Shown in pieces: positions 17,153-47,675 of a DNA stretch of 64,000 nt; within the stretch, counting starts at the first letter, position 1; each line of letters starts with the position of its first letter. The stretch lies in the sequence record OR142618.1, one strand, 5' to 3'. Both the position numbers and the translations under genes were made by a program. The notes beneath the pieces were generated by a model. That model did not search any database and was not told where the DNA came from. It worked only from the letters and a program-made list of their open reading frames with translations.

Positions 17153-17560
17153 ATGCAACATACTCACATTCGTTTCTACAACGAAGAAACTCAACAGATC
17201 GATAACCGCCGTGGCGCTACTGTTGCCTGGGAAACCGCCGGCAACAAGATCCGTATTTCCGTAGCAGCATGTTCGGAAATGGATAACTTCAACCGCAAGA
17301 CCGGACGTGAACATGCTGCTAGCCGTCTCGAAAGTGGCGACTACATCGAGTTTAACGGCACCGAACTTCTTAATGCACAGATGTCTTCTGTAAGTCATGT
17401 GCAGTCTGAAGGTCTCGTTCGTGCTATGTGCTTCTTGCTAGCACAAGGCAAAGGCGATCTATATTACCCGGCAAGCGAAGGTCAGCTTCGCAGCGAAGCC
17501 GAGTGCAATAGCTACAACGCCCTCGAGTACCTGAAACACCAGATGGGCATTCATCAGTAA
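17153..17560 (+). CDS. hypothetical protein, host-like codon usage
   Basis: 135 aa, GC-richer; phage-type motif ACSEMDNFNRKTGREHAASRL. Confidence 0.8.
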   Translation: MQHTHIRFYNEETQQIDNRRGATVAWETAGNKIRISVAACSEMDNFNRKTGREHAASRLESGDYIEFNGTELLNAQMSSVSHVQSEGLVRAMCFLLAQGKGDLYYPASEGQLRSEAECNSYNALEYLKHQMGIHQ

Positions 17561-17573
17561 GTATTCGGCCATT

Positions 17574-17616
17574 CGGAATTGCGATTTAGGTTTTGGAATT
17601 CTAAATCGCAATTCCG
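17574..17616. repeat. perfect 16-bp inverted repeat, 11-nt loop
   Basis: cggaattgcgatttag / ctaaatcgcaattccg. Confidence 0.9.
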
Positions 17617-17801
17617 GTTTCCAAATTCAATTTTAGGCACAAACTCGGATCCGCATTTGCATTTTGCATTTACATTTTGTGTTCTGAGTGTATATGCAAA
17701 ATGCAATCGCGCATGTTGTCGATGCATTGGCTAATCTTTTATTTTTGATAGTTTAGAAAAGATTAAGAACAGAAACTATCTGTAAATTAATAAAAATAAC
17801 A

Positions 17802-17830
17802 TTTACATTACATACACATATGCATATACT
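17802..17830 (+). promoter_or_regulatory. sigma70-type promoter
   Basis: TTTACA-17-TATACT with A-rich upstream sequence. Confidence 0.7.
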
Positions 17831-17836
17831 ATATAT

Positions 17837-18115
17837 AAGTTATGCGCTGTTGCATACGTAAATACCTCCTATGTTGTTTAGATATGTCGATTCTGGTATA
17901 ACCAGATAGACCTAAGGATGATGCTAGTGATTCCTTAGTATTGTATATTCTAGCTGAGTATAAAGAGTAAGGGGCTTTATACAAATAACAATTCCTTAGG
18001 CAAGATATACCGCTCCGTTGTGCTGACGAGCATAATTTGCCCAGATACAGAGCACGTGACTGGTCTGAGGAGCATTTATATCAGAAAGGCAGACTTATGT
18101 TTGCCTTTCTTTTTG
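17837..18115 (+). ncRNA. putative small RNA (ncRNA-2)
   Basis: Lies between a promoter and an intrinsic terminator, has no credible ORF, forms several hairpins and carries ACCUCCU near the 5' end. Confidence 0.6.
18084..18115 (+). terminator. intrinsic terminator
   Basis: gaaaggcagac-ttat-gtttgcctttc followed by T-tract. Confidence 0.8.
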
Positions 18116-18129
18116 AGCAGATATTCTCT

Positions 18130-18300
18130 TATTCACTTCCTTATTCATTTCTTTATTCATCTCTATTTCGTTTGTCACTTCCTTATTCATTTCTTTATTC
18201 ATCTCTATTTCATTTGTTATTGCAAATAAGACTAATTCTTATTTGCGTTTGTAATTTCATTTGTTATTGCAAATAAGACTAATTCGTATTTGCATTTGCA
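18130..18300. repeat. pyrimidine-rich direct repeats
   Basis: cttccttattcatttctttattcatctct x2; catttgttattgcaaataagactaattc x2. Confidence 0.85.
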
Positions 18301-18513
18301 ACGAAAAAGAATATGCAAATAATAACTAATCTTATTTGCATTTGCACTGCCTAGTATATGGATTGGTAGCATACTTGGAAATGGATAGTAAATAAGTAGT
18401 TGATTTGTTTATAAATTATACTTCTACACCATACAGATTGACCTTGCTATATATAGCTCGTGCGCGTGTATACAAGATGGTAAAAAATAATTTAAAAATA
18501 TTTTAAAAAATGC

Positions 18514-18637: not shown

Positions 18638-18720
18638 GTATACAAGCTTAAGGGGTAGGTGCCCCGAAAGTGTAGTAAGTAAACAACATAATCCTTCCAT
18701 CAGCTACAGAGGTATACAAC

Positions 18721-19425
18721 ATGTCCGTACATATCACTCGTCAACGTACCGACAAACAGCACGTCCTGGCACTGGCAATCAACGGCGTGGTCATCGGCCA
18801 GACCATGGCTACTTACACCACCCCGAGCAAGCGCACCTGGTCGGCGACCGCCGAAGTCGAACTGGCAGACGGCACTGTCGTTCAGTTCGAACAGAAGGAA
18901 GTGTTCAGCGCGATCCGCATCACCCGCGAAATCGAGCAGGCGCTCGACGGCAAGGAACTGGCGGCCAAGTACACCCCGGAACCGAAAGTTCCCGGGCAGA
19001 AGGGTCCGAAACCGCTCACCGACGAAAGCCGGCTCAGCAACGCGATCGCGATCGTCAAAGCGGCCATCACCCACACCGGCTTCGACGAAGCTACCCTGGT
19101 GTTCGACGGGGTCGACAAGGCCAACTTCGAGCAGAACAGCACCTCCGTCGGCAACAAGCTGCGTCGCCTGGGCTTCGTCTTCGAACTCGGCGCCGGCAAG
19201 GCGAACAGCGGCAAGGGCTTCCTGATCAACCGCAAAGCGCAGGCCGAGGCAGAAGCTGCCGAACGCAAGGCCAAGCGCGACGCCGAGAAGAAGGAACGCG
19301 AAGAAAAAGCGGCGGCTGCCAAGCGCGAAGCTGACGAACGCAAGGCCAAGCGTGAAGCCGAACGCGCCGAAAAGGTCGCTGAAAAGAACGCAGCGATCGC
19401 CGGGGCAGCGCAGGAAAGCAAGTAA
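18721..19425 (+). CDS. paralog A of a three-member GC-rich family; K/E/A-rich C-terminal tail
   Basis: Shared domain NGVVIGQ...TPSKRTWSA...EQKEVFSAIRITR; GAGG RBS; terminator follows. Confidence 0.9.
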   Translation: MSVHITRQRTDKQHVLALAINGVVIGQTMATYTTPSKRTWSATAEVELADGTVVQFEQKEVFSAIRITREIEQALDGKELAAKYTPEPKVPGQKGPKPLTDESRLSNAIAIVKAAITHTGFDEATLVFDGVDKANFEQNSTSVGNKLRRLGFVFELGAGKANSGKGFLINRKAQAEAEAAERKAKRDAEKKEREEKAAAAKREADERKAKREAERAEKVAEKNAAIAGAAQESK

Positions 19426-19440
19426 TTGCCCAACTGCGCC

Positions 19441-19469
19441 AGAAGGGGAGCAATAGCTCCCCTTTCTTC
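19441..19469 (+). terminator. intrinsic terminator
   Basis: gaaggggagc-aata-gctcccctttc. Confidence 0.8.
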
Positions 19470-19494
19470 ATGACCACACAATCTATATACTACT

Positions 19495-21487: not shown

Positions 21488-21895
21488 ATGGAAGATATTC
21501 TTAAAATTGCTAAACTAATCGGGTACGTAAACATACATGCAAATAAACATCTTCAGTATGATTTTAACAAAGATATGGAACATGTATGTGTTAGTGCCAA
21601 GACTAGGACAAGTATGAACGGAATAAAATACCTTTATGTAGTAATGAATATATATTATATATATTGCCAGCAAGAAAGTGTTGCCGTTATATTAAACGAA
21701 GTAAACATCGATGAAATGCCTATATTAGATAATCTTTATGCTAAACTTAATGATTTAACTACACATAAATCTGTTATAAAATTTAAATATACAGAAATAA
21801 CACAAGAACAAATAGATTTGTTGAATAATAGTGAAAGATATATAGTATATTTTGACTCTTATTTAGAAGAATACGGAATAGCTTCGTTTTATTAA
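21488..21895 (+). CDS. hypothetical protein
   Basis: 135-aa ORF in operon. Confidence 0.7.
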   Translation: MEDILKIAKLIGYVNIHANKHLQYDFNKDMEHVCVSAKTRTSMNGIKYLYVVMNIYYIYCQQESVAVILNEVNIDEMPILDNLYAKLNDLTTHKSVIKFKYTEITQEQIDLLNNSERYIVYFDSYLEEYGIASFY

Positions 21896-21908
21896 TTTTG
21901 AGGAATAT

Positions 21909-22106
21909 ATGAAAAAACAAACAGGATTTACAGATTGGCCATTGATTAGTTTGGGTACAATTATTATCTTGTGTGTATGGGTATTAATTCTACAATACAC
22001 AGAAATAAATGTACTAGAAGAAAAATGTAACAAAGTAGGTGGTATTTTTAATAACACGGTTTGCATACGGTCAGATGCAGTTATTAACTTAGATAAGGTA
22101 AAATAA
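21909..22106 (+). CDS. small membrane-anchored protein
   Basis: GAGG RBS; one TM segment followed by a C-x3-GG-x6-C motif. Confidence 0.7.
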   Translation: MKKQTGFTDWPLISLGTIIILCVWVLILQYTEINVLEEKCNKVGGIFNNTVCIRSDAVINLDKVK

Positions 22107-22107
22107 A

Positions 22108-22365
22108 ATGCCAAAACTTTACGTTAACAAAAAACATGATACCATTTATCTTCAATTAGATCATTTCTCATCCGATACTGTATCTCCAATTAATTACAAC
22201 GAAGATGTAGAATATGTAATTGATAGGATCCGTAGTCTGCACAAATCCGGATTCGGGTTTAGTCATATGAATACTCTACAAGAATATCTTACGGCAAGAA
22301 CAGAACAGGATAAGAAGTTTAAGCTTAAAGTAGAAGACTTTGAAGTAGTATCATTTAAGATTTAA
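22108..22365 (+). CDS. hypothetical protein
   Basis: 85-aa ORF in operon. Confidence 0.7.
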   Translation: MPKLYVNKKHDTIYLQLDHFSSDTVSPINYNEDVEYVIDRIRSLHKSGFGFSHMNTLQEYLTARTEQDKKFKLKVEDFEVVSFKI

Positions 22366-22386
22366 AATTATACATAATCAAAGAAT

Positions 22387-22415
22387 TTGACATTTGATGT
22401 GTATACTAGTATAAT
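22387..22415 (+). promoter_or_regulatory. perfect-consensus sigma70 promoter
   Basis: TTGACA-17-TATAAT. Confidence 0.9.
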
Positions 22416-22421
22416 TTGCTC

Positions 22422-22952
22422 ATGCTGTCGTAACAGCTACTTTGTTCCATTCACAAGCAGCTCTGTTCCATTACTGGATATTGGTAGTAGAAACTATCCC
22501 CATCGTGCCCACAGTATTGTTCTGTTAGAGACAGATTAAAACATACAAAAGTGGGTTATTTAAATTATGATTTTGGGTGCTGAAGTATAGTCGTTAGACA
22601 AGGATATGTCTAATGTTGCAAAGGACTATGCGAAACGTATTATATATCTTATCCGATATTAGATATGTAATAAAAGGATGAAGCTCTGGTAGAAACAGAG
22701 TGTAATTCTTGCTTGTATATCACACGGATATACAAAAGAATATACACACCAACTTCAGCATTGATGTAAATTTTCTAGCATAGGTATATAACATCGATGT
22801 TCCGGGATTCATTGGAAACAATGAGAGAATGATGTAATCTGAGGAAAAAGGTCCCCGCCTCGTCCATATTACGAAATGGTTTTGAGTACTTATGCCCTCG
22901 TCCTATATTGGCATATGGGTTTTATATTTCTCCCGTAATTACGGGAGAATAT
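22422..22952 (+). ncRNA. putative ~530-nt structured RNA (ncRNA-3)
   Basis: No ORF after a consensus promoter; long-range helix tgctgaagt/acttcagca, GAAA tetraloop, ends at a 22-bp palindrome. Confidence 0.7.
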
Positions 22953-23281
22953 AATTTCCTGAACCTACTTGGAAATGGACGCTTCTGCTGTGCTTCGCAC
23001 ATCATCTAAGGGCCTTCACCCTTACCGCTAAGAGCAAGAGCAAAAGCAATATAATTACAAATAAGAATTAATTATTGTTTAGTTTTATCGTAATGAATAT
23101 GAAGATAAAAACTAAACAATAATTCACATGTAGCGTTAGCTACTGTGAATATCTACTATAATATTAACCATATATGTATACAAGGGCATATTATGGCTGT
23201 TACTTGTTGACAGTTTGATATATGTGTTACACTGCATAAATCAAATGTACATTACAATGTTTTGATTATTAGGAACATACT

Positions 23282-24430: not shown

Positions 24431-24460
24431 AGAAAGGGAATTATAATTCCCTTTCTTTTT
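24431..24460 (+). terminator. intrinsic terminator
   Basis: agaaagggaat-tata-attccctttct followed by T-tract. Confidence 0.8.
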
Positions 24461-24579
24461 GGATCTATATTAGCAAATACTAATTAATCTTATTTGCACA
24501 AATTTAATCCTATTGTGTTTTCTATTTTGAAGTGCTACATTACATGTAGTTGCATAAAACTATATACAGGAGAAATGAT

Positions 24580-25131: not shown

Positions 25132-25220
25132 TTCGTTTGCTATACGTACTAATACGTTGTATACTGTTAGTACGTATAGCAAAAGTAACACATAACGTTT
25201 TGATTTAATGGAGCCCTAAC

Positions 25221-25514
25221 ATGAAAAAAGAATTTGAATCGCGGATTCGGACTCCCTCTCCGGCGCCAGCGCCCCGGACGCCCGATGTGTGCAGCGAGTG
25301 CAATGACACCGGGAAAGTCTATGACGAAAGCGGCGCCGGTCCGTGGAGTTGCTACGCCTGTACCGGTAACCCGGAGGTGATCGGCTACGCAAACGGCGAT
25401 GAGTTGGACAACATGCTGGATGACCGCACTGCTGTTCTCTCTCCAAGGAAGACCAGTTTTCACACCGTGCCAGTGTATCGACTGATCCACACCCAAAACA
25501 AAAGTTTTCAATAA
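25221..25514 (+). CDS. hypothetical protein with CxxC...CxxC Zn-ribbon, GC-rich
   Basis: CSECNDTG...CYACTG; GGAG RBS. Confidence 0.75.
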   Translation: MKKEFESRIRTPSPAPAPRTPDVCSECNDTGKVYDESGAGPWSCYACTGNPEVIGYANGDELDNMLDDRTAVLSPRKTSFHTVPVYRLIHTQNKSFQ

Positions 25515-25562
25515 AATCGATATGGAATTGGCCCTCCGGCAAGCCGGAATAGAGGTGAAGCC

Positions 25563-25772
25563 ATGAAGACATTTTTGAAGATGCTCGCATATTGCGTGCT
25601 TGGGACATCCATTGGCATTGCCATCAGCCAATGGTTCATCTTCGTCCTAGAGATGAGGCTTGGCGCCGTGCTCTGGTACATCGTTGGCCTTGGTCCTGTG
25701 CTGCTTGTGTTTTGCATTTTGGGCAGCTTCCTTCAATGGCTGATTCATAAGAACTTGGAGAAAAAGCAATGA
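25563..25772 (+). CDS. small membrane protein, GC-rich
   Basis: GAGGT RBS; two hydrophobic segments. Confidence 0.7.
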   Translation: MKTFLKMLAYCVLGTSIGIAISQWFIFVLEMRLGAVLWYIVGLGPVLLVFCILGSFLQWLIHKNLEKKQ

Positions 25773-25843
25773 CCGACCACGCAGAGCTGCGGAGGCTGGC
25801 TAAAGAAGTGATCCGAATTGAACGAAATGAGGATGCAGCATGA
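25769..25843 (+). pseudogene. 24-aa remnant resembling the N-terminus of Ead/Ea22-like prophage proteins
   Basis: MTDHAELRRLAKEVIRIERNEDAA*; ATGA-coupled on both sides. Confidence 0.45.
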
Positions 25844-26376
25844 GCATTGACTGGAGCAAGGCACCAGAGGGTGCGACGCACTACCAACCGGAATCACGTG
25901 GCTTCCATGCGGCATGGTTCCGACTTCAAGGGGGGAAGGCTCGCGAAATGTGGGTCGTGATACCCGGCGGTGCGCTTGAGCACATCATCGATCCGACTGT
26001 CTTCGACGAGAGCATGCAGAACCTGATCGCCCGCCCCGTAGAACCTGCCACCTGGAACGGCCAGGGCCTGCCGCCGGTTGGCCTGATGGTGGAGTGGAAG
26101 GCAGGCCTTGATCACGACTGGCAGCGCGTAACCGTGCTTGCCTACGCCAATGGCGACGCGTGGTTTCAGCCTGAGGATGGCCCGTCTTTCATCGTCGGCA
26201 ACCCGGCAAACTTCAGGCGTATCCGCACCCCCGAGCAGTTGGTCGCCGAGGAGCGGGAAAAGGCGATTAATCAGATGATTTCTGATGCTGGATACGTAGA
26301 TCCGAAGATTGGCACATTTGTGGCTATGCGCAATCTCTACGACGCCGGCTACCGGCGTCGGGAGGAAGGGAAATGA
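25840..26376 (+). CDS. Pseudomonas temperate-phage-type hypothetical protein
   Basis: MSIDWSKAPEGATHY ... WNGQGLPPVG ... RTPEQLVAEEREKAI ... LYDAGYR, a typical prophage-family pattern. Confidence 0.8.
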   Translation: MSIDWSKAPEGATHYQPESRGFHAAWFRLQGGKAREMWVVIPGGALEHIIDPTVFDESMQNLIARPVEPATWNGQGLPPVGLMVEWKAGLDHDWQRVTVLAYANGDAWFQPEDGPSFIVGNPANFRRIRTPEQLVAEEREKAINQMISDAGYVDPKIGTFVAMRNLYDAGYRRREEGK

Positions 26377-26639
26377 GCAGACTGACAGCTGAGCAAGCCC
26401 GTGACATAGCGCGAGCGAAAGACGATGTCGATACTATCCTCAACGACATCGCCAAAACAGCCGCAGAAGGAAAGTACGTGTACACTACCCGCGCCTATGG
26501 GTTCGGCACAGGCGGCGGACGGCGCAGCGACGCGATCCTCAAAGTGTTGCGTAGCCTCGGCTACGACTGTGCTGTGCATGCTGAGGGACGCCAGTCTGTT
26601 GACCTGTGGCTTGAAGTGAAATGGGGAGACAAGCCATGA
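26373..26639 (+). CDS. hypothetical protein, GC-rich
   Basis: 88 aa, ATGA-coupled, GGAAGG RBS. Confidence 0.75.
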   Translation: MSRLTAEQARDIARAKDDVDTILNDIAKTAAEGKYVYTTRAYGFGTGGGRRSDAILKVLRSLGYDCAVHAEGRQSVDLWLEVKWGDKP

Positions 26640-27082
26640 CTAACAACCCCGGAGATTCAAAAATGATCGTAGAAAACGCCAAGCAAGCCGCCGAAGACTT
26701 CAAAACTTCCATGGCTAAGATTTTTCCGAATTACATCGCCAGGGCGTCGGTTTCCGATAACCTTGGTCCGGCGATGACAATTTCGTTTGCGAATGTCGGT
26801 TGCGCTTCCGAAGCCCCTAACAGCATTCTGATGAATGCGAGCGGTTACATGCGCTTTATGATGCATTTGTGTGACAATTGCGGGAATGTATTGCCAGAAG
26901 GTTCGCCGGTAGAAATTGAGCTACTAATGTGGTCTATCCCCTATCGTTCGGAAGTGATCAAGTTCCGCAAGATCAAGGGCAAGACACCAGCCGAAGCTAT
27001 GCAAAAGCTAGTCAAGTGGTTTGAAAAAACGCTGAAGCTATCCGGGGTCTGTAATGGTCTCCACGTAGGACACGCAGAATGA
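26636..27082 (+). CDS. hypothetical protein
   Basis: ATGA-coupled start MTNNPGDSK; GGAG RBS. Confidence 0.7.
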   Translation: MTNNPGDSKMIVENAKQAAEDFKTSMAKIFPNYIARASVSDNLGPAMTISFANVGCASEAPNSILMNASGYMRFMMHLCDNCGNVLPEGSPVEIELLMWSIPYRSEVIKFRKIKGKTPAEAMQKLVKWFEKTLKLSGVCNGLHVGHAE

Positions 27083-27480: not shown

Positions 27481-27729
27481 AGCATGACCCCGGTCGACCC
27501 TGACAGTGGCATTAATAGCATCAGTAAAACCACAAGAAATTCTCATAGCTGAAATGGAACAGTTAAGAACAAAGAACAGTGAATACAAAGAAAGAGGTTT
27601 TTAGCGGCTAAATTGTTGCGCTTTTCTTCGATATTTAGTATATTTCTATTGACGTGCTAGGGCATTTTGTACTAATATAGCACTTGAAGGCTAGGTATTC
27701 CGCCAAAGTCTACTACCGGAGAACTTCCG

Positions 27730-28017
27730 ATGATTGTTAAAGTCGCTGCTTTCCGTAACGCTGTTGACCACCTTTTCCGCGTGGTCAATGTCGACTATCA
27801 CGCTTGCGTGCGCGCAGACGAGCTGCGCAACTGGCAAAGCATTGCAAGTCGTGTTCTAGCCGAAGTCGATGCCTTAGAATGCAAGCGCGCTAGACAGGAC
27901 GACCTCGATCAGCAGCGCCGCAGCATCGAAACAGCCCGCGAACGCATGGACCAGGCAGCGCAACGCATCGCCCAACTCGAAACCGTTATCCGTCCCGCTG
28001 TAGGGCGCATGCAATGA
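27730..28017 (+). CDS. hypothetical protein with C-terminal coiled coil, GC-rich
   Basis: TTGACG promoter at 27649; GGAG RBS. Confidence 0.8.
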   Translation: MIVKVAAFRNAVDHLFRVVNVDYHACVRADELRNWQSIASRVLAEVDALECKRARQDDLDQQRRSIETARERMDQAAQRIAQLETVIRPAVGRMQ

Positions 28018-28168
28018 GCGCCCTTCGCTTCGCCGCAATCCGGAATTGTCAAAACCAGCATGCACCAGCGCCATCAAAACTGACGATGAACATCCGCAAT
28101 GCAGATATGGAAAGAGACAAGAAATGAAATTCTAAATTACTTAAACAAACACAATAGGAGCAGAATAC

Positions 28169-28580: not shown

Positions 28581-28821
28581 CATTTACAATATATCTATAA
28601 AAGAATATAGTAGTGACACAGTTGTTAAATTGCAAACACTAATTAATCTTATTTGCATTTGCTATCTTGTATAATAGAAACGACTTCTAAACATGGATAT
28701 GAGATGGAAAACTTAGATAGGATCTCTGTTACAAATTTTTGAGTTACAATACATAGTAGTTTTGCTATTATGTGTTTATAGAAGTTTAATAACAGAACTA
28801 AAACATAAAGGATTGTCTGTC

Positions 28822-31000: not shown

Positions 31001-31185
31001 AAAAAGCTCTTTCAAGTGTAATAGGTATCATTGTTCTGTTACTAGGCGTATTTATGGTAGATAATCCTACAATAGGATTAATGCTAGGAGGGTTAGTAGG
31101 TAGTTATATTTTCAGCATAGGCGGAGTAATTCTATGTGTTATATCGTTTATGATATTTGCACTTGCCTTTGTTGAGATGAAATGA
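30997..31185 (+). CDS. small membrane protein
   Basis: Almost entirely hydrophobic; ATGA overlap. Confidence 0.65.
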   Translation: MKKALSSVIGIIVLLLGVFMVDNPTIGLMLGGLVGSYIFSIGGVILCVISFMIFALAFVEMK

Positions 31186-31383
31186 ATGATTTATTTAAGT
31201 ATTTGGACATTTGTATCTATAATAGTATCGATATATCATAATATTTTAACTATAAAAATGCATAAACAGGTACTGTTGTATAAAGATTATACTTTTTATA
31301 AGGAAAGATTAGATTTTGTCTGTAATAGTTATATATTTTTCAATGTAATATTCTTCATTTTCATTGCATGCGTTACAAAATAG
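31186..31383 (+). CDS. small membrane protein
   Basis: Two hydrophobic segments. Confidence 0.55.
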   Translation: MIYLSIWTFVSIIVSIYHNILTIKMHKQVLLYKDYTFYKERLDFVCNSYIFFNVIFFIFIACVTK

Positions 31384-31407
31384 ATCACAAAAAGTTTTAA
31401 AATTCAG

Positions 31408-31436
31408 TTTACAGCATGCATAGTTTTACGTATTAT
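31408..31436 (+). promoter_or_regulatory. sigma70-type promoter
   Basis: TTTACA-17-TATTAT. Confidence 0.65.
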
Positions 31437-31442
31437 AAACAC

Positions 31443-31945
31443 ACAAAGCAATACAGCATAACGCATTGTAAGCAACACTAAACGGGAGACACCGTCCCGC
31501 AAGCAGCCCGCCCGCGATGTTCGCGGGCTGCGGCAAACAGGTGTACAAGGTCTAGTAACGTGGAAGGCGCAGCATACCTTTCCTTAAATCGGAAATCGGT
31601 CAATGACGTACCTGCCCCTGGACACTGCTAGACCTTGCTGCTACAGGCGGGACAGCTACAAAGGTACACTGTATGTATCTATGCTTTACCCCGCTTTGTA
31701 GCAGGTCTTAAAACGGTCTACTGGCATATGCCTTAGTGCTAGTAGGAATCATTAACCTAAAACTATTATATGCTTCCTGGAGGTGAAGAGTATGCCGCCG
31801 CAGCATTAAATATACATTATGATGATGATAATTATGAATGCCGAAACACCGCTTCGATTCGTTTAAAAGACAGATGTCTGAATCGAATGTTTTTGGGCAA
31901 AAAGGTCCCTTAGATGGGATTTTTTTGCGGCTGCTAACTAGCAAA
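31443..31945 (+). ncRNA. putative ~500-nt two-domain structured RNA (ncRNA-4)
   Basis: GC-rich and ORF-free; nested helices gtcccgc/gcgggac, caaggtctag/ctagaccttg, gcagcccgc/gcgggctgc, gctacaaag/ctttgtagc, tgctagt/actagca. Confidence 0.7.
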
Positions 31946-32042
31946 CGCGAATTAATCTTATTTGCAATTTAAGAAAAATACCAGTTGACTGTAGCTTGCT
32001 AACATAGTACATTTAACTCATAAATCCGCAGGAGTAGCAGTT

Positions 32043-32210
32043 ATGTCGCTGAAAAAGAAACTTTTAAATTCTGTGCAGATTAAATATTTCGGCAACATTT
32101 ATACTTACATTTATGATGCCGTTCATGACGTTATTTATTTCGATAACCAGCAAATGTCTTATGCTGAATTTGAAGAGGCAGTAGACTGTAAGCTAGGAGA
32201 AGTTCTGTGA
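32043..32210 (+). CDS. 55-aa hypothetical protein
   Basis: TTGACT-17-TACATT promoter at 31985; GCAGGAG RBS. Confidence 0.7.
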   Translation: MSLKKKLLNSVQIKYFGNIYTYIYDAVHDVIYFDNQQMSYAEFEEAVDCKLGEVL

Positions 32211-32482: not shown

Positions 32483-32715
32483 GCGTATACTGTAATTGCA
32501 TAGCATGCGGTGGAGATGATCCGTATGCTGTATGTGAAAATGTGTTAATGGATATCCAAAAGCACAAATATAATACTGGTCCCAGCTGGGGGCTGGTAGT
32601 TGCGGCAGTATTGTGTTTGGTAGGAATGGGATTAGCAGGTAACGCAGCACTATCTGATAAAAAAGAAACACCGTGCGAAACTACACAACAAAAACAAGAG
32701 GTGTATAATGAGTAA
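32479..32715 (+). CDS. small Cys-motif membrane protein
   Basis: CNCIACGG plus one TM segment. Confidence 0.65.
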   Translation: MSVYCNCIACGGDDPYAVCENVLMDIQKHKYNTGPSWGLVVAAVLCLVGMGLAGNAALSDKKETPCETTQQKQEVYNE

Positions 32716-32914
32716 CAAAACAACAGACATGCTGGTAGATGAATTTCTGTGCGAGCGTGCATCTTTTTCTCCGTTTAGCGAAGGTGTTCATGCAGCTAAA
32801 CTAGGGCAGAAATATACAGACTGCCCGTATACCAAAAATGAGCCGTATGAACGTAACGAATGGATTCGAGGACATCAAATGTGGCATGATTATTCTGTTC
32901 AACAATACAAATAA
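32708..32914 (+). CDS. Rmf/CrpP-fold protein (ribosome modulation factor-like)
   Basis: EG-VH-A-AKL-G-QKYTD-CPY-x7-R-NE-W-IR-G matches the RMF pattern G-x2-A-x3-G-x5-CPY-xn-R-x2-W-x2-G. Confidence 0.65.
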   Translation: MSNKTTDMLVDEFLCERASFSPFSEGVHAAKLGQKYTDCPYTKNEPYERNEWIRGHQMWHDYSVQQYK

Positions 32915-34240: not shown

Positions 34241-34438
34241 ATGCGTAGCACACTCGGAGTAGAACATGCATCGAGAGAAATTCTTTCTGCATGGGTTGAT
34301 GTAATGCAGCAACTCAACTGTGAGCATTTCTATAGCGAACTGAAAGACAATGCAGTTCGCTTAGATTTACAGGAATATATGTATACTGAACGTCTCGTTC
34401 AGTATTATACAGATCTTCCAGTCACTAATGCTGGTTGA
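34241..34438 (+). CDS. hypothetical protein
   Basis: GCAGGAG RBS; own promoter; terminator at 34469-34498. Confidence 0.75.
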   Translation: MRSTLGVEHASREILSAWVDVMQQLNCEHFYSELKDNAVRLDLQEYMYTERLVQYYTDLPVTNAG

Positions 34439-34617
34439 TGCCGTCGCCGGGCGTGAACTACATTTATTAGGAAAGGGGTTTTAAGCCCCTTTCCTTTTGA
34501 ATGTTAAGTGTAAGTGCAAATTAATCTTATTTACTTGTTACAATTTAGTTCTTGAATTCACACATAATAGTATGTATAGTTTTAATATATAAGATACCAA
34601 CATGTGAGATTGTAAAA

Positions 34618-35070
34618 ATGAAACTTCATAAAATGAATGGTAATGTTTTTATTCGGTTTGAAGTAGATACTTCATCGGATAATTTTGTAGAGAAGGTTTA
34701 CGAAGAAATTATGCAACTTCCTGCAAAATTGTATTTCGAAAAGATAGAACGTAGAACTTGGTTCTGTAGCTTTTACACAGGCTACGACGAATTGGTAGAA
34801 TTCGTTAATGAAATAAAAGACAGAGTTAGTTCAGAAGGTGTTTTCTTTGACAGGCCATTGCAGCTAACTCTTATCAATTCGGGCGGGGTAGAAGTAAATA
34901 TTTCCGATATAGAACCAGATCTTCACTATCTCTTTGATAACGATATTACAACTACAAAACTTATCTCTATGGAAGGATCCTGCAATATGGTAGATTTGCT
35001 CATGTGCGAATGGGTACCTATTAGCATTCGAACTTCTATTGCTAAGGCATTTACTGACAAATTTTTATAA
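34618..35070 (+). CDS. hypothetical protein
   Basis: ATG at 34618 in track ORF 34552. Confidence 0.7.
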   Translation: MKLHKMNGNVFIRFEVDTSSDNFVEKVYEEIMQLPAKLYFEKIERRTWFCSFYTGYDELVEFVNEIKDRVSSEGVFFDRPLQLTLINSGGVEVNISDIEPDLHYLFDNDITTTKLISMEGSCNMVDLLMCEWVPISIRTSIAKAFTDKFL

Positions 35071-36906: not shown

Positions 36907-37029
36907 ATTGCAAATACAAATAATAATTATTCTTATTTGCATTTAGTGATGTAAATAATTCTTATTTGTATTTGCGATTAATTCTTATTTGCTACAATAG
37001 ATAGAATAAGAATAATTCACATTTGCAAT

Positions 37030-37374: not shown

Positions 37375-37845
37375 ATGTCTAATGTAAGCATCCCTGCTGT
37401 AACTGTAGAGAACATCGGCACCCTGCGCATCGTGCGCACCGCTAACAAGGAGGTCGGAAGTGTGCTCGACCTAAAAGTTAACGGGGTAGTAGTAGGGCAA
37501 GCTTTCCCGCTCTACAGCACAAAAACCCAGCGTAGCTGGAACGCGAGCATGCACGCTACCGTTAACGGCGTAGAGGTGCAGTTTGCACAGGAAGGCGTGT
37601 TCAGTGCAATCCGCATTGCACGGGCGTTCGAGGATGCAGTAAAGCACGCCGTTAGCAACGGCGAACAAGGGCAACCCCTCCCCGCGCCGGCGGCGGCAGA
37701 AGCGCAAGCAGAAGCGCAAGCAGAAGCCCCGGCAGCGCAGACCGAGGATGCGCCGGAGACCCCGGCAGCCGAAGCTAAGCCCGCCCGCAAAGGCGGCAGC
37801 AAAGGCGGCAGCAAAGGCGGCAGCAAAGGCGGCAGCAAAAAGTAA
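37375..37845 (+). CDS. paralog B of three-member family; A/E/P linker and (KGGS)4 tail
   Basis: NGVVVGQ...STKTQRSWNA...AQEGVFSAIRIARA; TAGACA-17-TAAGCT promoter at 37314; GGAG RBS. Confidence 0.9.
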   Translation: MSNVSIPAVTVENIGTLRIVRTANKEVGSVLDLKVNGVVVGQAFPLYSTKTQRSWNASMHATVNGVEVQFAQEGVFSAIRIARAFEDAVKHAVSNGEQGQPLPAPAAAEAQAEAQAEAPAAQTEDAPETPAAEAKPARKGGSKGGSKGGSKGGSKK

Positions 37846-37999
37846 GCGCTGCTAACACAGGAAAGGGGCAACTGCCCCTTTCCTTTTATGTCCTAGTTGT
37901 AAACGCAAATTAATCTTATTTGCATTTGCACAAGTCATTCTCCGGTTGCATTACTGCGGTAAGATGTTAGTATATATGTAGCTATACGGAGTAATTGCT

Positions 38000-43220: not shown

Positions 43221-43552
43221 ATTTATATTAAAATCCCTTTTATTAACTTCAGTTGTCAGTGTTGGCATACTACTGATATTCATTATTATTTCATTATTAA
43301 TGTTGGGCTTAGGACCGATAGTTCCATTCCTTATTTAATTTTAATTATTTGCAAGCAAATGCAAATGCGAATAATTCTTATTATCCAGCAGGCTACTGTA
43401 CCTAATCTTCGTTAGATAAAATCTATTAGAATCTACAAAGTCCATTAAAACGTTCAATTGTACATGGTGGCCAGATCTGCATATACTACACACATGAAGC
43501 AAGCAAACAGCGCTTCATAAACAAACCCAAATACAGCTAGGAGTTCCAAATC

Positions 43553-43990
43553 ATGACCAAAGCAACCGTTACCGTCGAGCAATCCGCAATCAAACTGGTC
43601 CGCCGCAACCTGGAAGGGCACCGGCAGGCCCTGCTGCTGAACGGCGTCGAAGTAGGCAGCAGCGAAGCGTTCTACAAGACCAAAACCCAGCGCACCTGGT
43701 CGGCGAAGATCGACGCCAACATCAACGGCAAGGACATCGTCCTCGAACAGAAAGGCGTGTTCAGTGCGATCCGGATCGCCCGGGCGATGGAACAAGCAAT
43801 CCTGTTCATCCTGACCGACGGCAAAGAAGGCGCCGAGATGCCGGCCAGCACGCTGAGCAAGGAAGAGCAAGCCCACAACCTGGTCAAGGCAGTAGTTCAG
43901 GTTGCCGGCCACGCAGTCCAGTCCGGCGACGCTGCCCCGGCGAAGAAAGGCAGCTCGAAGAAGCGCAAAGAAGCCCAGCCGGAAGCATAA
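43553..43990 (+). CDS. paralog C of three-member family; basic tail
   Basis: NGVEVGS...KTKTQRTWSA...EQKGVFSAIRIARA; AGGAG RBS; terminator at 44004-44029. Confidence 0.9.
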   Translation: MTKATVTVEQSAIKLVRRNLEGHRQALLLNGVEVGSSEAFYKTKTQRTWSAKIDANINGKDIVLEQKGVFSAIRIARAMEQAILFILTDGKEGAEMPASTLSKEEQAHNLVKAVVQVAGHAVQSGDAAPAKKGSSKKRKEAQPEA

Positions 43991-44146
43991 TCCGGACTAC
44001 ACCGAGAAAGCACCGAAAGGTGCTTTCTCTATGACTGTTAATAACAAATATTCTTATTTGCATCTATTCTGATATAATAATAACTCTTATTTACAAATCA
44101 TACTGAATACTGTATTTTACACATTAAACATTGTAGGTAATATAAA

Positions 44147-46357: not shown

Positions 46358-46406
46358 CACCAACTAAAGCCCCGTCCCAGGCGGGGCTTTACCGAAGGAA
46401 AAGATC

Positions 46407-46616
46407 ATGATCGAACAACTGAAAGACATGCTCGTAGCGCAACGCATGCGCATGAACCAACTCGAAAAACTGCGCTACACCGGACGCGTCGCTAGCGAGT
46501 TGCATGCCCACGCCAGGGAATTGTGTGAAGCATTGGAACTGGCAATTGCAAATGCCCAGTGCCTGGAAATGCGCAAGTGCGAAGAGGGCACCCTGCACGC
46601 CCTCTTCGCACAATAA
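46407..46616 (+). CDS. hypothetical protein, GC-rich
   Basis: AAGGA RBS; helical. Confidence 0.7.
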   Translation: MIEQLKDMLVAQRMRMNQLEKLRYTGRVASELHAHARELCEALELAIANAQCLEMRKCEEGTLHALFAQ

Positions 46617-46649
46617 CCCACCGCGCACAACCCGACAAGGAAACTAACC

Positions 46650-47141
46650 ATGAGCACTACCATCCCCGATTCGATTCATCCGAGTGATCTTCCTGAAATC
46701 GGGCTGCCATTAGCCGACGGAACCTTCTTTGCCCGCCAATGGCTCAATGGCAAGGAATACGCCTACGTCGATCTCGGCAAAAGCGCCGAGTTCACTGGAG
46801 AATGGGGCAAGTATGGCCATGACGTGGTCGGCGCCGGCAGCTACCGAGACGGAGCTTCGAACACGGTCGCTATGGCAGAAGCTGGCAGTCCGATTGCCAA
46901 GCAAGCCATGGAGATCGGAGAAGGCGTATTTATTCCCTCTGTTCTGGAACTGGCTCTTCTGTTCTCCGCCAAGCAAGCAGGCGAGTTGTCTGGTTTCGCA
47001 GATCGCTGGTATTGGTCGAGTTCGCAGGACTCCGCTAACGCCGCCTTCAACATGGACTTCGGCGACGGCTACACAAGCGGACACGTCAAGTACGTCGACT
47101 TCCGTGTCCGCCCCGTCCGCAAGATTCTCATCCTTCAGTAA
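46650..47141 (+). CDS. DUF1566 / Lcl C-terminal (C-type lectin fold) protein
   Basis: IPSVLELALL ... WYWSSSQDSANAAFNMDFGDG ... FRVRPVR. Confidence 0.75.
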   Translation: MSTTIPDSIHPSDLPEIGLPLADGTFFARQWLNGKEYAYVDLGKSAEFTGEWGKYGHDVVGAGSYRDGASNTVAMAEAGSPIAKQAMEIGEGVFIPSVLELALLFSAKQAGELSGFADRWYWSSSQDSANAAFNMDFGDGYTSGHVKYVDFRVRPVRKILILQ

Positions 47142-47279
47142 TATAGCCCCGGCGAGCAAACATTGCTCGGAAGGTGCTAGCTGAACGACTGACGGAACAA
47201 TAAATAACGGTTGACGTGCGTCTAGCGGCGGATGCATAATAGCTACAAGACAACACAGCAAGCCCCGGAGGGCGCAACC

Positions 47280-47480
47280 ATGTCCCAGATCGTAGATGTC
47301 AAGCAAATTGCAATTGATGCAAACCGTCGCCCGGCCTACAATGCGGTCATGGTGCGCTGGTTGATGCAGGAAGCTGAACTTCACCGTAGCTGCGGTCGCA
47401 CCGCTACCCTGTTCTGCATCGTTCGCAACCGCCCCGACGGCACCCAGCGCCAGCTTGTGCAGCTTGTGGCTAGCGAGTAA
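47280..47480 (+). CDS. hypothetical protein, GC-rich
   Basis: TTGACG-18-CATAAT promoter at 47211; GGAGG RBS. Confidence 0.75.
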   Translation: MSQIVDVKQIAIDANRRPAYNAVMVRWLMQEAELHRSCGRTATLFCIVRNRPDGTQRQLVQLVASE

Positions 47481-47510
47481 CCTCTACAACCCTACGCCCA
47501 GGAGGCCGTC

Positions 47511-47675
47511 ATGAATGCTGTACTGGCTAAACTTCAAAACGAACGCTGTGCAACCCTTCGCTTGATGTTGCTCCCAGAGAACCGCGGGTATCGGTTCACT
47601 GACCACCCCTGGGCAAAGCAAATCCGCAATCTGCACGACGAAGCCAAGTGCATCCGCGAACATTACAGTAAGTAA
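47511..47675 (+). CDS. 54-aa hypothetical protein, GC-rich
   Basis: AGGAGG RBS; MNAVLAKLQNERC... Confidence 0.7.
   Translation: MNAVLAKLQNERCATLRLMLLPENRGYRFTDHPWAKQIRNLHDEAKCIREHYSK

Follow-up and report, generated by a model that had tools for sequence, protein, structure and literature searches.

The type phage of the genus Wroclawvirus, the sole genus of the Arenbergviridae, is PA5oct, which relies on host RNA polymerase and in which four transcribed regions without plausible open reading frames (ORFs) have been reported (Lood et al. 2020, PMC7318152). The PA5oct record (MK797984) carries the feature ncRNA 21951..22401 (EST35_0068), described as "putative lncRNA; ncRNA002; annotation based on RNA-Seq data", and the share of this RNA among phage reads is 4.65% at 5 min (early), 5.04% at 15 min (middle) and 1.23% at 25 min (late in infection; PMC7318152). 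No structure, ends or function of ncRNA002 were offered in the PA5oct paper (PMC7318152), later literature on these phages adds nothing concerning it, and six years after the annotation the literature gives neither a fold nor a role. We describe here the corresponding locus of the Wroclawvirus Pseudomonas phage Callisto, as contained in a stretch of 64,000 nucleotides (nt) of record OR142618.1. This whole stretch is referred to as the window, its numbering is used throughout, and features are on the plus strand unless noted. A preliminary description made from the letters of the window had proposed a structured non-coding RNA (ncRNA) at 31408-31945, and we conclude that the locus is almost certainly a stand-alone gene for a structured ncRNA of ~480 nt. 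It has the attributes of a stand-alone bacterial-type ncRNA gene, namely its own promoter, its own intrinsic terminator and no conserved ORF.

Results

In a blastn comparison with 50,697 phage records, the segment 31380-32000 is 100% identical to Callisto OR142618.1 217380-218000 and matches eight further Wroclawvirus jumbo phages at 99.0-99.8%, with no matches outside the Wroclawviruses. Over 620 nt, the flagged stretch aligns with PA5oct 21877-22492 at 94% identity. The coordinates assigned to ncRNA002 in PA5oct from RNA-seq convert to 31455-31909, and collinear flanking ORFs are found in PA5oct, in Callisto and in metagenomic contigs. Judged by its sequence, the Callisto RNA is the ortholog of PA5oct ncRNA002, with the same neighbours, the same promoter and the same 3' hairpin, but with two 25-30-nt patches replaced and about a dozen point changes. 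Because it was already annotated and published as PA5oct ncRNA002, the RNA is not novel as an entity. The proposal of a large phage ncRNA of unknown class thus stands as regards class, as no Rfam family matches, and as regards pairing, which is under purifying selection, but not as regards newness. Published RNA-seq of the 94%-identical PA5oct locus contradicts the possibility that the promoter is silent, and discrete plus-strand transcription has been demonstrated in PA5oct alone. The Callisto record has no annotation at this locus, and five GenBank records (Cassandra, Ettore, Paride, PAC2 and Deifobo) call small hypothetical ORFs here, on both strands.

The promoter recognized in the preliminary description, TTTACA (31408-31413) and TATTAT (31431-31436) separated by 17 bp, is the best sigma-70-like site within 31100-32150, agrees with the consensus at 10 of 12 positions over 31408-31436, and has a predicted start at ~31441-31445. 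Natural variation was collected as 17 distinct haplotypes, from ten GenBank genomes plus metagenomic and SRA-derived contigs, and both hexamers are invariant among them, the single change being at spacer position 31414. Directly 5' of the -35 hexamer, the A/T-rich tract aaaaagttttaaaattcag (31389-31407) is likewise invariant in all haplotypes and resembles an UP element, a function that it may serve. Upstream of the promoter, the AT-rich segment 31186-31383 is called as a 65-residue ORF in some genomes, and it is unlikely to be a conserved gene because it has suffered large deletions and rearrangements in Ettore, MIJ3, Deifobo and PA5oct.

At the other end, a hairpin with an A-tract and a U7 tract (31920-31926) occupies 31897-31928 and is a probable intrinsic terminator (-18.9 kcal/mol, z-score -5.15 relative to shuffles), compared with -17.9 kcal/mol for the ncRNA001 terminator and -14.0 kcal/mol for a terminator at 24431. 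Positions 31903 and 31905 of this hairpin change with pairing kept and 31913 varies in the loop; a simple consensus terminator scan does not list the hairpin among its sites. The RNA end is most likely this hairpin and U7 tract, at ~31926, giving an ncRNA body of ~480 nt at 31444-31926 with a minimum free energy of -164.4 kcal/mol. The preliminary description had instead ended the RNA at a GCAAA...CTTATTTGC element, which proves to be a copy of a dispersed intergenic DNA motif lying outside the RNA. Its account of a GC-rich island fits the 5' half, where GC content is 0.57 at 31475-31624 against 0.21-0.35 in the flanks, but not the 3' half, at merely 0.38-0.39.

GC richness alone is not diagnostic, because GC-rich islands are common in the window and at least one is protein-coding. 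The window as a whole is 34% GC, and several of its numerous islands are richer than the ncRNA002 stretch, including those at 18700-19489, 25188-26671, 27706-28120, 37377-37913, 43508-44048 and 46390-47630 (0.6-0.75). The island at 37375-37845 is a 156-residue ORF with terminal GGSK repeats, and the islands may be genes acquired from GC-rich hosts.

The segment 31440-31975 folds at -182.1 kcal/mol, compared with -142.2 +/- 6.0 kcal/mol for dinucleotide shuffles (z -6.64), and none of 100 shuffles folds as well, so that the outcome named beforehand as damaging, a fold no more stable than shuffled controls, did not occur. Among 130 consecutive 487-nt pieces of the window (mean z -1.54, standard deviation 1.81), the ncRNA002 piece has z -5.56 and ranks fourth. 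At 200-nt resolution it is unremarkable (z -2.1 to -3.7), and therefore the folding signal comes from the whole architecture and not from a single hairpin. The pieces that fold better are 34362-34848 (z -7.7), 22674-23160 (z -6.7) and 17317-17803 (z -5.9), the first of which covers a terminator, a copy of the dispersed motif and a promoter gap.

Several elements, namely hairpin P1, rods A and B, hairpins C and D and the 3' hairpin, are common to all predictions, whether made with three choices of end, with the PA5oct allele or from the alignment. P1 (31483-31499, CGGGA/UCCCG) has a pair probability (p) of 0.96 and on its own a free energy of -6.5 kcal/mol (z -1.4); it is invariant, so variation provides no test of it. 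Rod A (31546-31637), which is found in every fold, is an irregular hairpin of 92 nt (-34.6 kcal/mol, z -3.75) built on a base of 12 bp, with internal loops that include GA/RGA and an apical loop at 31584-31590. Abutting it is rod B (31638-31704), a 67-nt hairpin (-29.2 kcal/mol, z -4.65), followed by hairpin C (31717-31746), which has 11 bp and a variable loop (-14.2 kcal/mol, p 0.93), and hairpin D (31843-31893), formed by UUCGAUUC/GAAUCGAA plus AGAC/GUCU (p 0.99). Two further hairpins are variable. The first is GC-rich (31503-31536) and contains a replaced patch at 31512-31536 (patch 1), and its 3' part is the 5' strand of a predicted long-range helix, P4, in which 31527-31534 pairs with 31797-31804 (p 0.94). 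The second is AT-rich (31803-31841), is closed by GCAUU/AAUGC and contains the other replaced patch, at 31808-31836 (patch 2).

The eight complementary pairs from which a two-domain structure had been proposed all exist, seven of them where they had been placed and the eighth with its ctttgtagc arm, the partner of gctacaaag, at 31694-31702. Three of the helices are well predicted (caaggtctag/ctagaccttg, ttcgattc/gaatcgaa and cggga/tcccg, p > 0.94), whereas the others are not favoured, although the local gcagcccgc/gcgggctgc hairpin is almost isoenergetic in the terminated RNA (+1.7 kcal/mol). The two-domain arrangement itself lies 21.7 kcal/mol above the minimum. Closing the first domain with gtcccgc/gcgggac plus gctacaaag/ctttgtagc costs 9-11 kcal/mol at a pair probability of ~0, and closing the second with tgctagt/actagca costs 8-12 kcal/mol, 31737-31743 belonging to hairpin C and the 31937-31943 arm lying past the probable RNA end. 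The suggestion that competing hairpins act as a switch is possible on paper and found no support.

A different closure of the whole RNA is offered by a 7-nt complement between AGCAGCC (31502-31508) and GGCUGCU (31929-31935), whose 3' arm lies just past the U7 tract, so that the helix could form solely in read-through transcripts. This has a bearing on whether the element is instead a cis-acting leader or attenuator of the operon starting at 32043, the first ATG of the downstream genes, with the hairpin and U7 tract as a conditional terminator and read-through forming the 31502-31508/31929-31935 helix. The complement falls exactly past the U-tract and reaches p 0.99 when included, a change at 31934 (C>U) leaves it paired, the downstream genes are on the same strand, and a leader that mostly terminates would resemble an abundant short RNA. 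However, two elements intervene before the gene, namely a boundary motif found after terminators at other places and a promoter-like site of its own, no riboswitch or leader family matches, and the PA5oct authors annotated a discrete RNA whose end is ~130 nt ahead of the gene, and we regard a leader as rather improbable. The intervening promoter-like site (31985-32013, TTGACT-17-TACATT) agrees with the consensus at 9 of 12 positions, a weak fit of the order that chance produces in such AT-rich DNA.

At its 5' end the RNA begins with an A/C-rich leader (31444-31482) for which merely short helices of 2-4 bp are predicted. These ~40 nt of little predicted structure, or an exposed loop, could pair with host or phage mRNAs while the body stabilises the transcript, and the terminator hairpin and U-tail that follow a U-rich stretch are typical of Hfq-dependent small RNAs. 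There is, however, no significant antisense match within the 64-kb window other than the dispersed DNA motif and no run of the Hfq distal-face (ARN)n type, and small RNAs of that kind seldom require 480 nt of selected structure. A base-pairing regulator is unlikely in our estimation.

Natural variation gives further evidence for the fold. Outside the two replaced patches, 20 point substitutions fall within the RNA, and 13 of these are at unpaired positions and seven keep a pair; none breaks one, although 64% of positions are paired. Random placement of the same base changes is expected to break 7.5 pairs, and zero is reached in none of 20,000 randomisations. The seven helix substitutions convert G-C to G-U, G-U to A-U, or A-U to G-U. 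In rod A, 31612 C>U retains its pair and 31584, 31597 and 31620 vary in loops; in rod B, 31646 G>A converts a G-U to an A-U pair in five haplotypes; and in hairpin D, 31884 C>U retains its pair while the loop varies at 31873 and 31874. Hairpin C has loop changes at 31729 and 31732 and, in three contigs, a 2-nt loop insertion, with the stem unaltered, and indels within the RNA are confined to this loop and a linker (31709). In contrast, the AT-rich spacer at 31188-31297, just upstream, bears large deletions in several of the same genomes. These patterns strongly support the view that selection preserves the fold and not a protein product.

In PA5oct and SRR11301205 the two patches vary more drastically, being wholly different in sequence although the kilobases around them are 98-100% identical. 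Nonetheless, both patches in both versions are still hairpins on the same closing pairs, and the patch 2 replacement in PA5oct includes a 1-nt deletion. The replaced patch 1 of PA5oct pairs over 12 bp with the conserved GUAUGCCGCCGC (31791-31802), and this complementarity supports the predicted long-range helix. The P4 duplex energy is -24.4 kcal/mol in PA5oct, a value reached by 0.45% of shuffles, and -19.4 kcal/mol in Callisto, which 8% reach.

The description of the locus as non-coding is borne out. The longest plus-strand ORFs have 47 and 44 codons, and neither is gene-like. The 47-codon ORF (31770-31913) is frameshifted in PA5oct by a 1-nt deletion; the 44-codon ORF (31838-31972) has no ribosome-binding site, and five of its codons differ between Callisto and PA5oct, all changing the amino acid and none silent. 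Neither ORF has a Pfam match. Three annotated small ORFs sit on the untranscribed strand, and the 41-codon minus-strand ORF has no homolog outside the genus among 5.8 billion proteins. An mRNA for a small protein, which the ORF calls in five GenBank records might suggest, was rejected on these grounds, as was a hok-like type I toxin mRNA, neither plus-strand ORF being conserved as a protein or hydrophobic throughout. A ribozyme or degenerate mobile intron fared no better. The compact multi-helix fold is superficially intron-like, but the models of group I and II introns and of small ribozymes give no match at E <= 10, and there is no host gene to interrupt. We consider a small-protein mRNA, a ribozyme or an intron very unlikely.

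Of more interest is a perfect Shine-Dalgarno sequence, GGAGGUGA (31779-31786), placed 5 nt ahead of an AUG at 31792 that opens a five-codon ORF, MPPQH, with its stop at 31807-31809 (the whole element spanning 31779-31809). Its translation is putative. Among shuffles, 0.2% contain GGAGGUGA and 2.5% contain GGAGG-N5-9-AUG. The hairpin predicted locally is a weak one (-5.1 kcal/mol, z -0.36), and the mini-ORF codons are the 3' strand of P4. The RNA could accordingly be a minigene or a dual-function RNA, in which ribosomes loaded on AUG-CCG-CCG-CAG-CAU-stop, and translation of the Pro-Pro mini-ORF, are the effect, either by engaging ribosomes or through peptidyl-tRNA drop-off that ties up a host-preferred tRNA-Pro, and perhaps with remodelling of P4. 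The ribosome-binding site, AUG and stop codon (TAA in most phages, TGA in PA5oct) are retained in all haplotypes, CCG is a minor proline codon (17%) in the AT-rich phage ORFs, and PA5oct encodes its own tRNA-Pro(TGG) (PMC7318152). Nonetheless, the role in P4 accounts for the GC-rich codons equally well, selection on the ORF is inseparable from selection on the helix as 31761-31807 is invariant, and a mini-ORF has no need of ~480 nt of conserved structure. We consider a minigene quite unlikely.

Searches gave no known family for the RNA and, in the collections covered, no relative outside the genus. No Rfam 15 family reaches its gathering score in the whole window, and a permissive scan of 31200-32100 gives four chance-level matches of 10-16 bits (E 1.6-6), far below the gathering scores. 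On current models, this argues against 6S RNA, tmRNA, RNase P, ROOL and GOLLD, as well as against introns, riboswitches and small ribozymes. Within the window there is neither a tRNA or tmRNA nor a paralog of ncRNA002. Blastn against plasmids gives no match, IMG/VR has none for three flanking proteins or one 20-mer, and JGI metagenomes have none for two 20-mers. A 22-mer is absent from 185,579 species genomes, so that nothing points to the GC-rich half having come from a host; exact-word DNA scans such as these are blind to relatives below roughly 90% identity. Among 5.8 billion proteins, the 55-residue protein next to the RNA and the spurious 41-residue ORF return self-matches only.

Known kinds of RNA decoy were also considered. 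For a Csr/Rsm-type sponge, GGA occurs 8 times compared with 6.1 expected, ANGGA is absent, and two GGA are fully unpaired. For a CrcZ-type Hfq/Crc sponge, there is no AANAANAA, no (ARN)x4, and one (ARN)x3 compared with 1.6 expected. Both types were rejected, as was an anti-CRISPR repeat mimic, for which a comparison by eye only with P. aeruginosa repeats gave no match.

The motif at 31939-31966, T[AT]GCAAAnnCnAATTAATCTTATTTGCA, marks the boundary beyond the RNA. As a 27-mer it has four copies within three mismatches in the window (24471-24497, 28630-28656, 31939-31965 and 37897-37923) where none is expected, and its 16-nt core has 29 copies within three mismatches compared with 3.59 +/- 2.03 expected. 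Some 25 looser copies, sometimes clustered, include those at 18222-18339, 36925-36992, 38785, 39515 and 45010. The motif is partly palindromic (GCAAA...TTTGC), its copies are mostly on the plus (transcribed) strand, and several lie directly after terminator T-runs and ahead of promoter-like sequences. It is a dispersed DNA-level signal at the start of the next unit, and probably an operator or a phage-specific promoter element.

Its spread over tens of kilobases also bears on a role for the transcript in replication, in which an RNA that stays hybridised to DNA would be processed by RNase H and prime phage DNA synthesis. Precedents for replication primers are ColE1 RNA II, which ncRNA002 resembles in size and structure, and the T4 origin transcripts. 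Abundance that is early and middle, and lower late, would suit a primer, as would the RNase H-like protein encoded by PA5oct (PMC7318152). However, the locus is not set apart by a GC-skew inflection, by a cluster of iterons or by an unwinding element, the motif is dispersed, and we find such a role highly improbable.

The window also contains an ortholog of PA5oct ncRNA001, at ~17803-18114 (98.6% identity), whose promoter is TTTACA-17-TATACT and whose terminator, a clean one of -17.9 kcal/mol, lies at 18083-18110. The genes neighbouring ncRNA002 are small and have no Pfam or PHROG function, apart from one weak match. This is in a 68-residue ORF at 32708-32914, ~780 nt downstream and present in all relatives, which matches Pfam RMF (ribosome modulation factor) below threshold, scoring 24.7 bits (E 2.5e-5) where the cutoff is 27.9. 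An RMF-like gene is noteworthy here, as replication in dormant cells has been reported for this phage genus.

Discussion

The architecture of ncRNA002 is the strongly supported part of our model. Host sigma-70 RNA polymerase initiates at ~31443 at the near-consensus TTTACA-17-TATTAT promoter, and transcription most likely stops at ~31926, at the hairpin and U7 tract. The RNA folds into a multi-branched structure in which the abutting rods A and B are accompanied by hairpins C and D, by the 31527-31534/31797-31804 helix and by two peripheral hairpins that can change freely in sequence. Beyond this the model is tentative. The compact fold of the RNA would allow it to accumulate and to act in trans in early and middle infection, with the conserved internal loops of the rods offered to a host or phage protein, as a scaffold or decoy in the manner of 6S, CsrB/RsmZ or CrcZ. 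We tentatively favour such a trans-acting protein scaffold or decoy, while putting it at somewhat less than probable. Support for it is indirect and comes from the abundance and stability of the RNA, from long helices that carry conserved internal loops, from the tolerance of change at the periphery, and from the absence of any catalytic or riboswitch family match.

Several observations weigh against this interpretation and the fold on which it is built. The binding of a partner protein is here a prediction, ncRNA002 has no detectable kinship with 6S, CsrB/RsmZ or CrcZ, and the motifs of the known Pseudomonas protein sponges (GGA enrichment, ANGGA, AANAANAA and (ARN)x4) are absent. The strong ribosome-binding site and five-codon ORF do not fit a purely protein-binding scaffold. 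As regards the fold, three pieces of the window surpass ncRNA002 in folding relative to shuffles, and the structure used in the substitution test was derived from one of the sequences compared. Double-sided covariation is seen in one of 156 pairs and is essentially absent because the sequences, from one genus and 94-100% identical, are so close. The ends rest on a promoter match, a hairpin and the rough RNA-seq coordinates of a relative.

What is new here is the probable ends of the RNA and a fold backed by variation. A protein product is also excluded, as are the known sponge families, and two oddities have come to light, the pair of replaceable hairpins and the perfect ribosome-binding site with its Pro-Pro mini-ORF. 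In our judgement, ncRNA002 is unlikely to be the founding member of a new class of large, structured phage RNAs active in host takeover. If it were, it could be an RNA-protein machine, or a minigene RNA that reprograms host translation through its Pro-Pro mini-ORF, the host-preferred CCG codon and the phage tRNA-Pro. The Wroclawvirus Paride replicates in deep-dormant Pseudomonas aeruginosa (PMC10761892), and a takeover role might aid Wroclawvirus replication in such cells. Should takeover, or growth on dormant cells, prove to require the RNA, it would join the few large functional phage RNAs whose role is known, whereas if its deletion had no phenotype it would stay an abundant orphan RNA. As a discovery ncRNA002 is ordinary, but it offers a good subject for experiment in phages that are noted for killing dormant cells.

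Comparison with known systems illustrates both what is shared and what is peculiar. The companion ncRNA001 (~17857-18092) is also abundant, lies in the same long terminal-repeat region and has a TTTACA-type promoter and an A-tract/U-tract terminator, but it is half the size, has a GC content of 0.40 and shares no sequence similarity with ncRNA002. The phage lambda bar minigenes, which are the precedent for an effect exerted by a mini-ORF, likewise have a strong ribosome-binding site followed by a very short ORF inside a phage transcript, but the bar ORFs are two codons long and have no large conserved fold, compared with the five codons, putatively translated, of ncRNA002. ROOL and GOLLD share with ncRNA002 a length of hundreds of nt, a multi-branched form, carriage by phages and a function that is unknown, although their covariance models do not match ncRNA002, which is known from a single genus; they often adjoin tRNAs, and the ncRNA002 window is without tRNA genes. 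6S RNA differs in having a large central bubble, which the predicted ncRNA002 fold does not. Nonetheless, 6S, CsrB/RsmY/RsmZ and CrcZ are abundant, stable, independently transcribed and trans-acting RNAs, and it is the likeness of ncRNA002 to these that we adopt as a working model.

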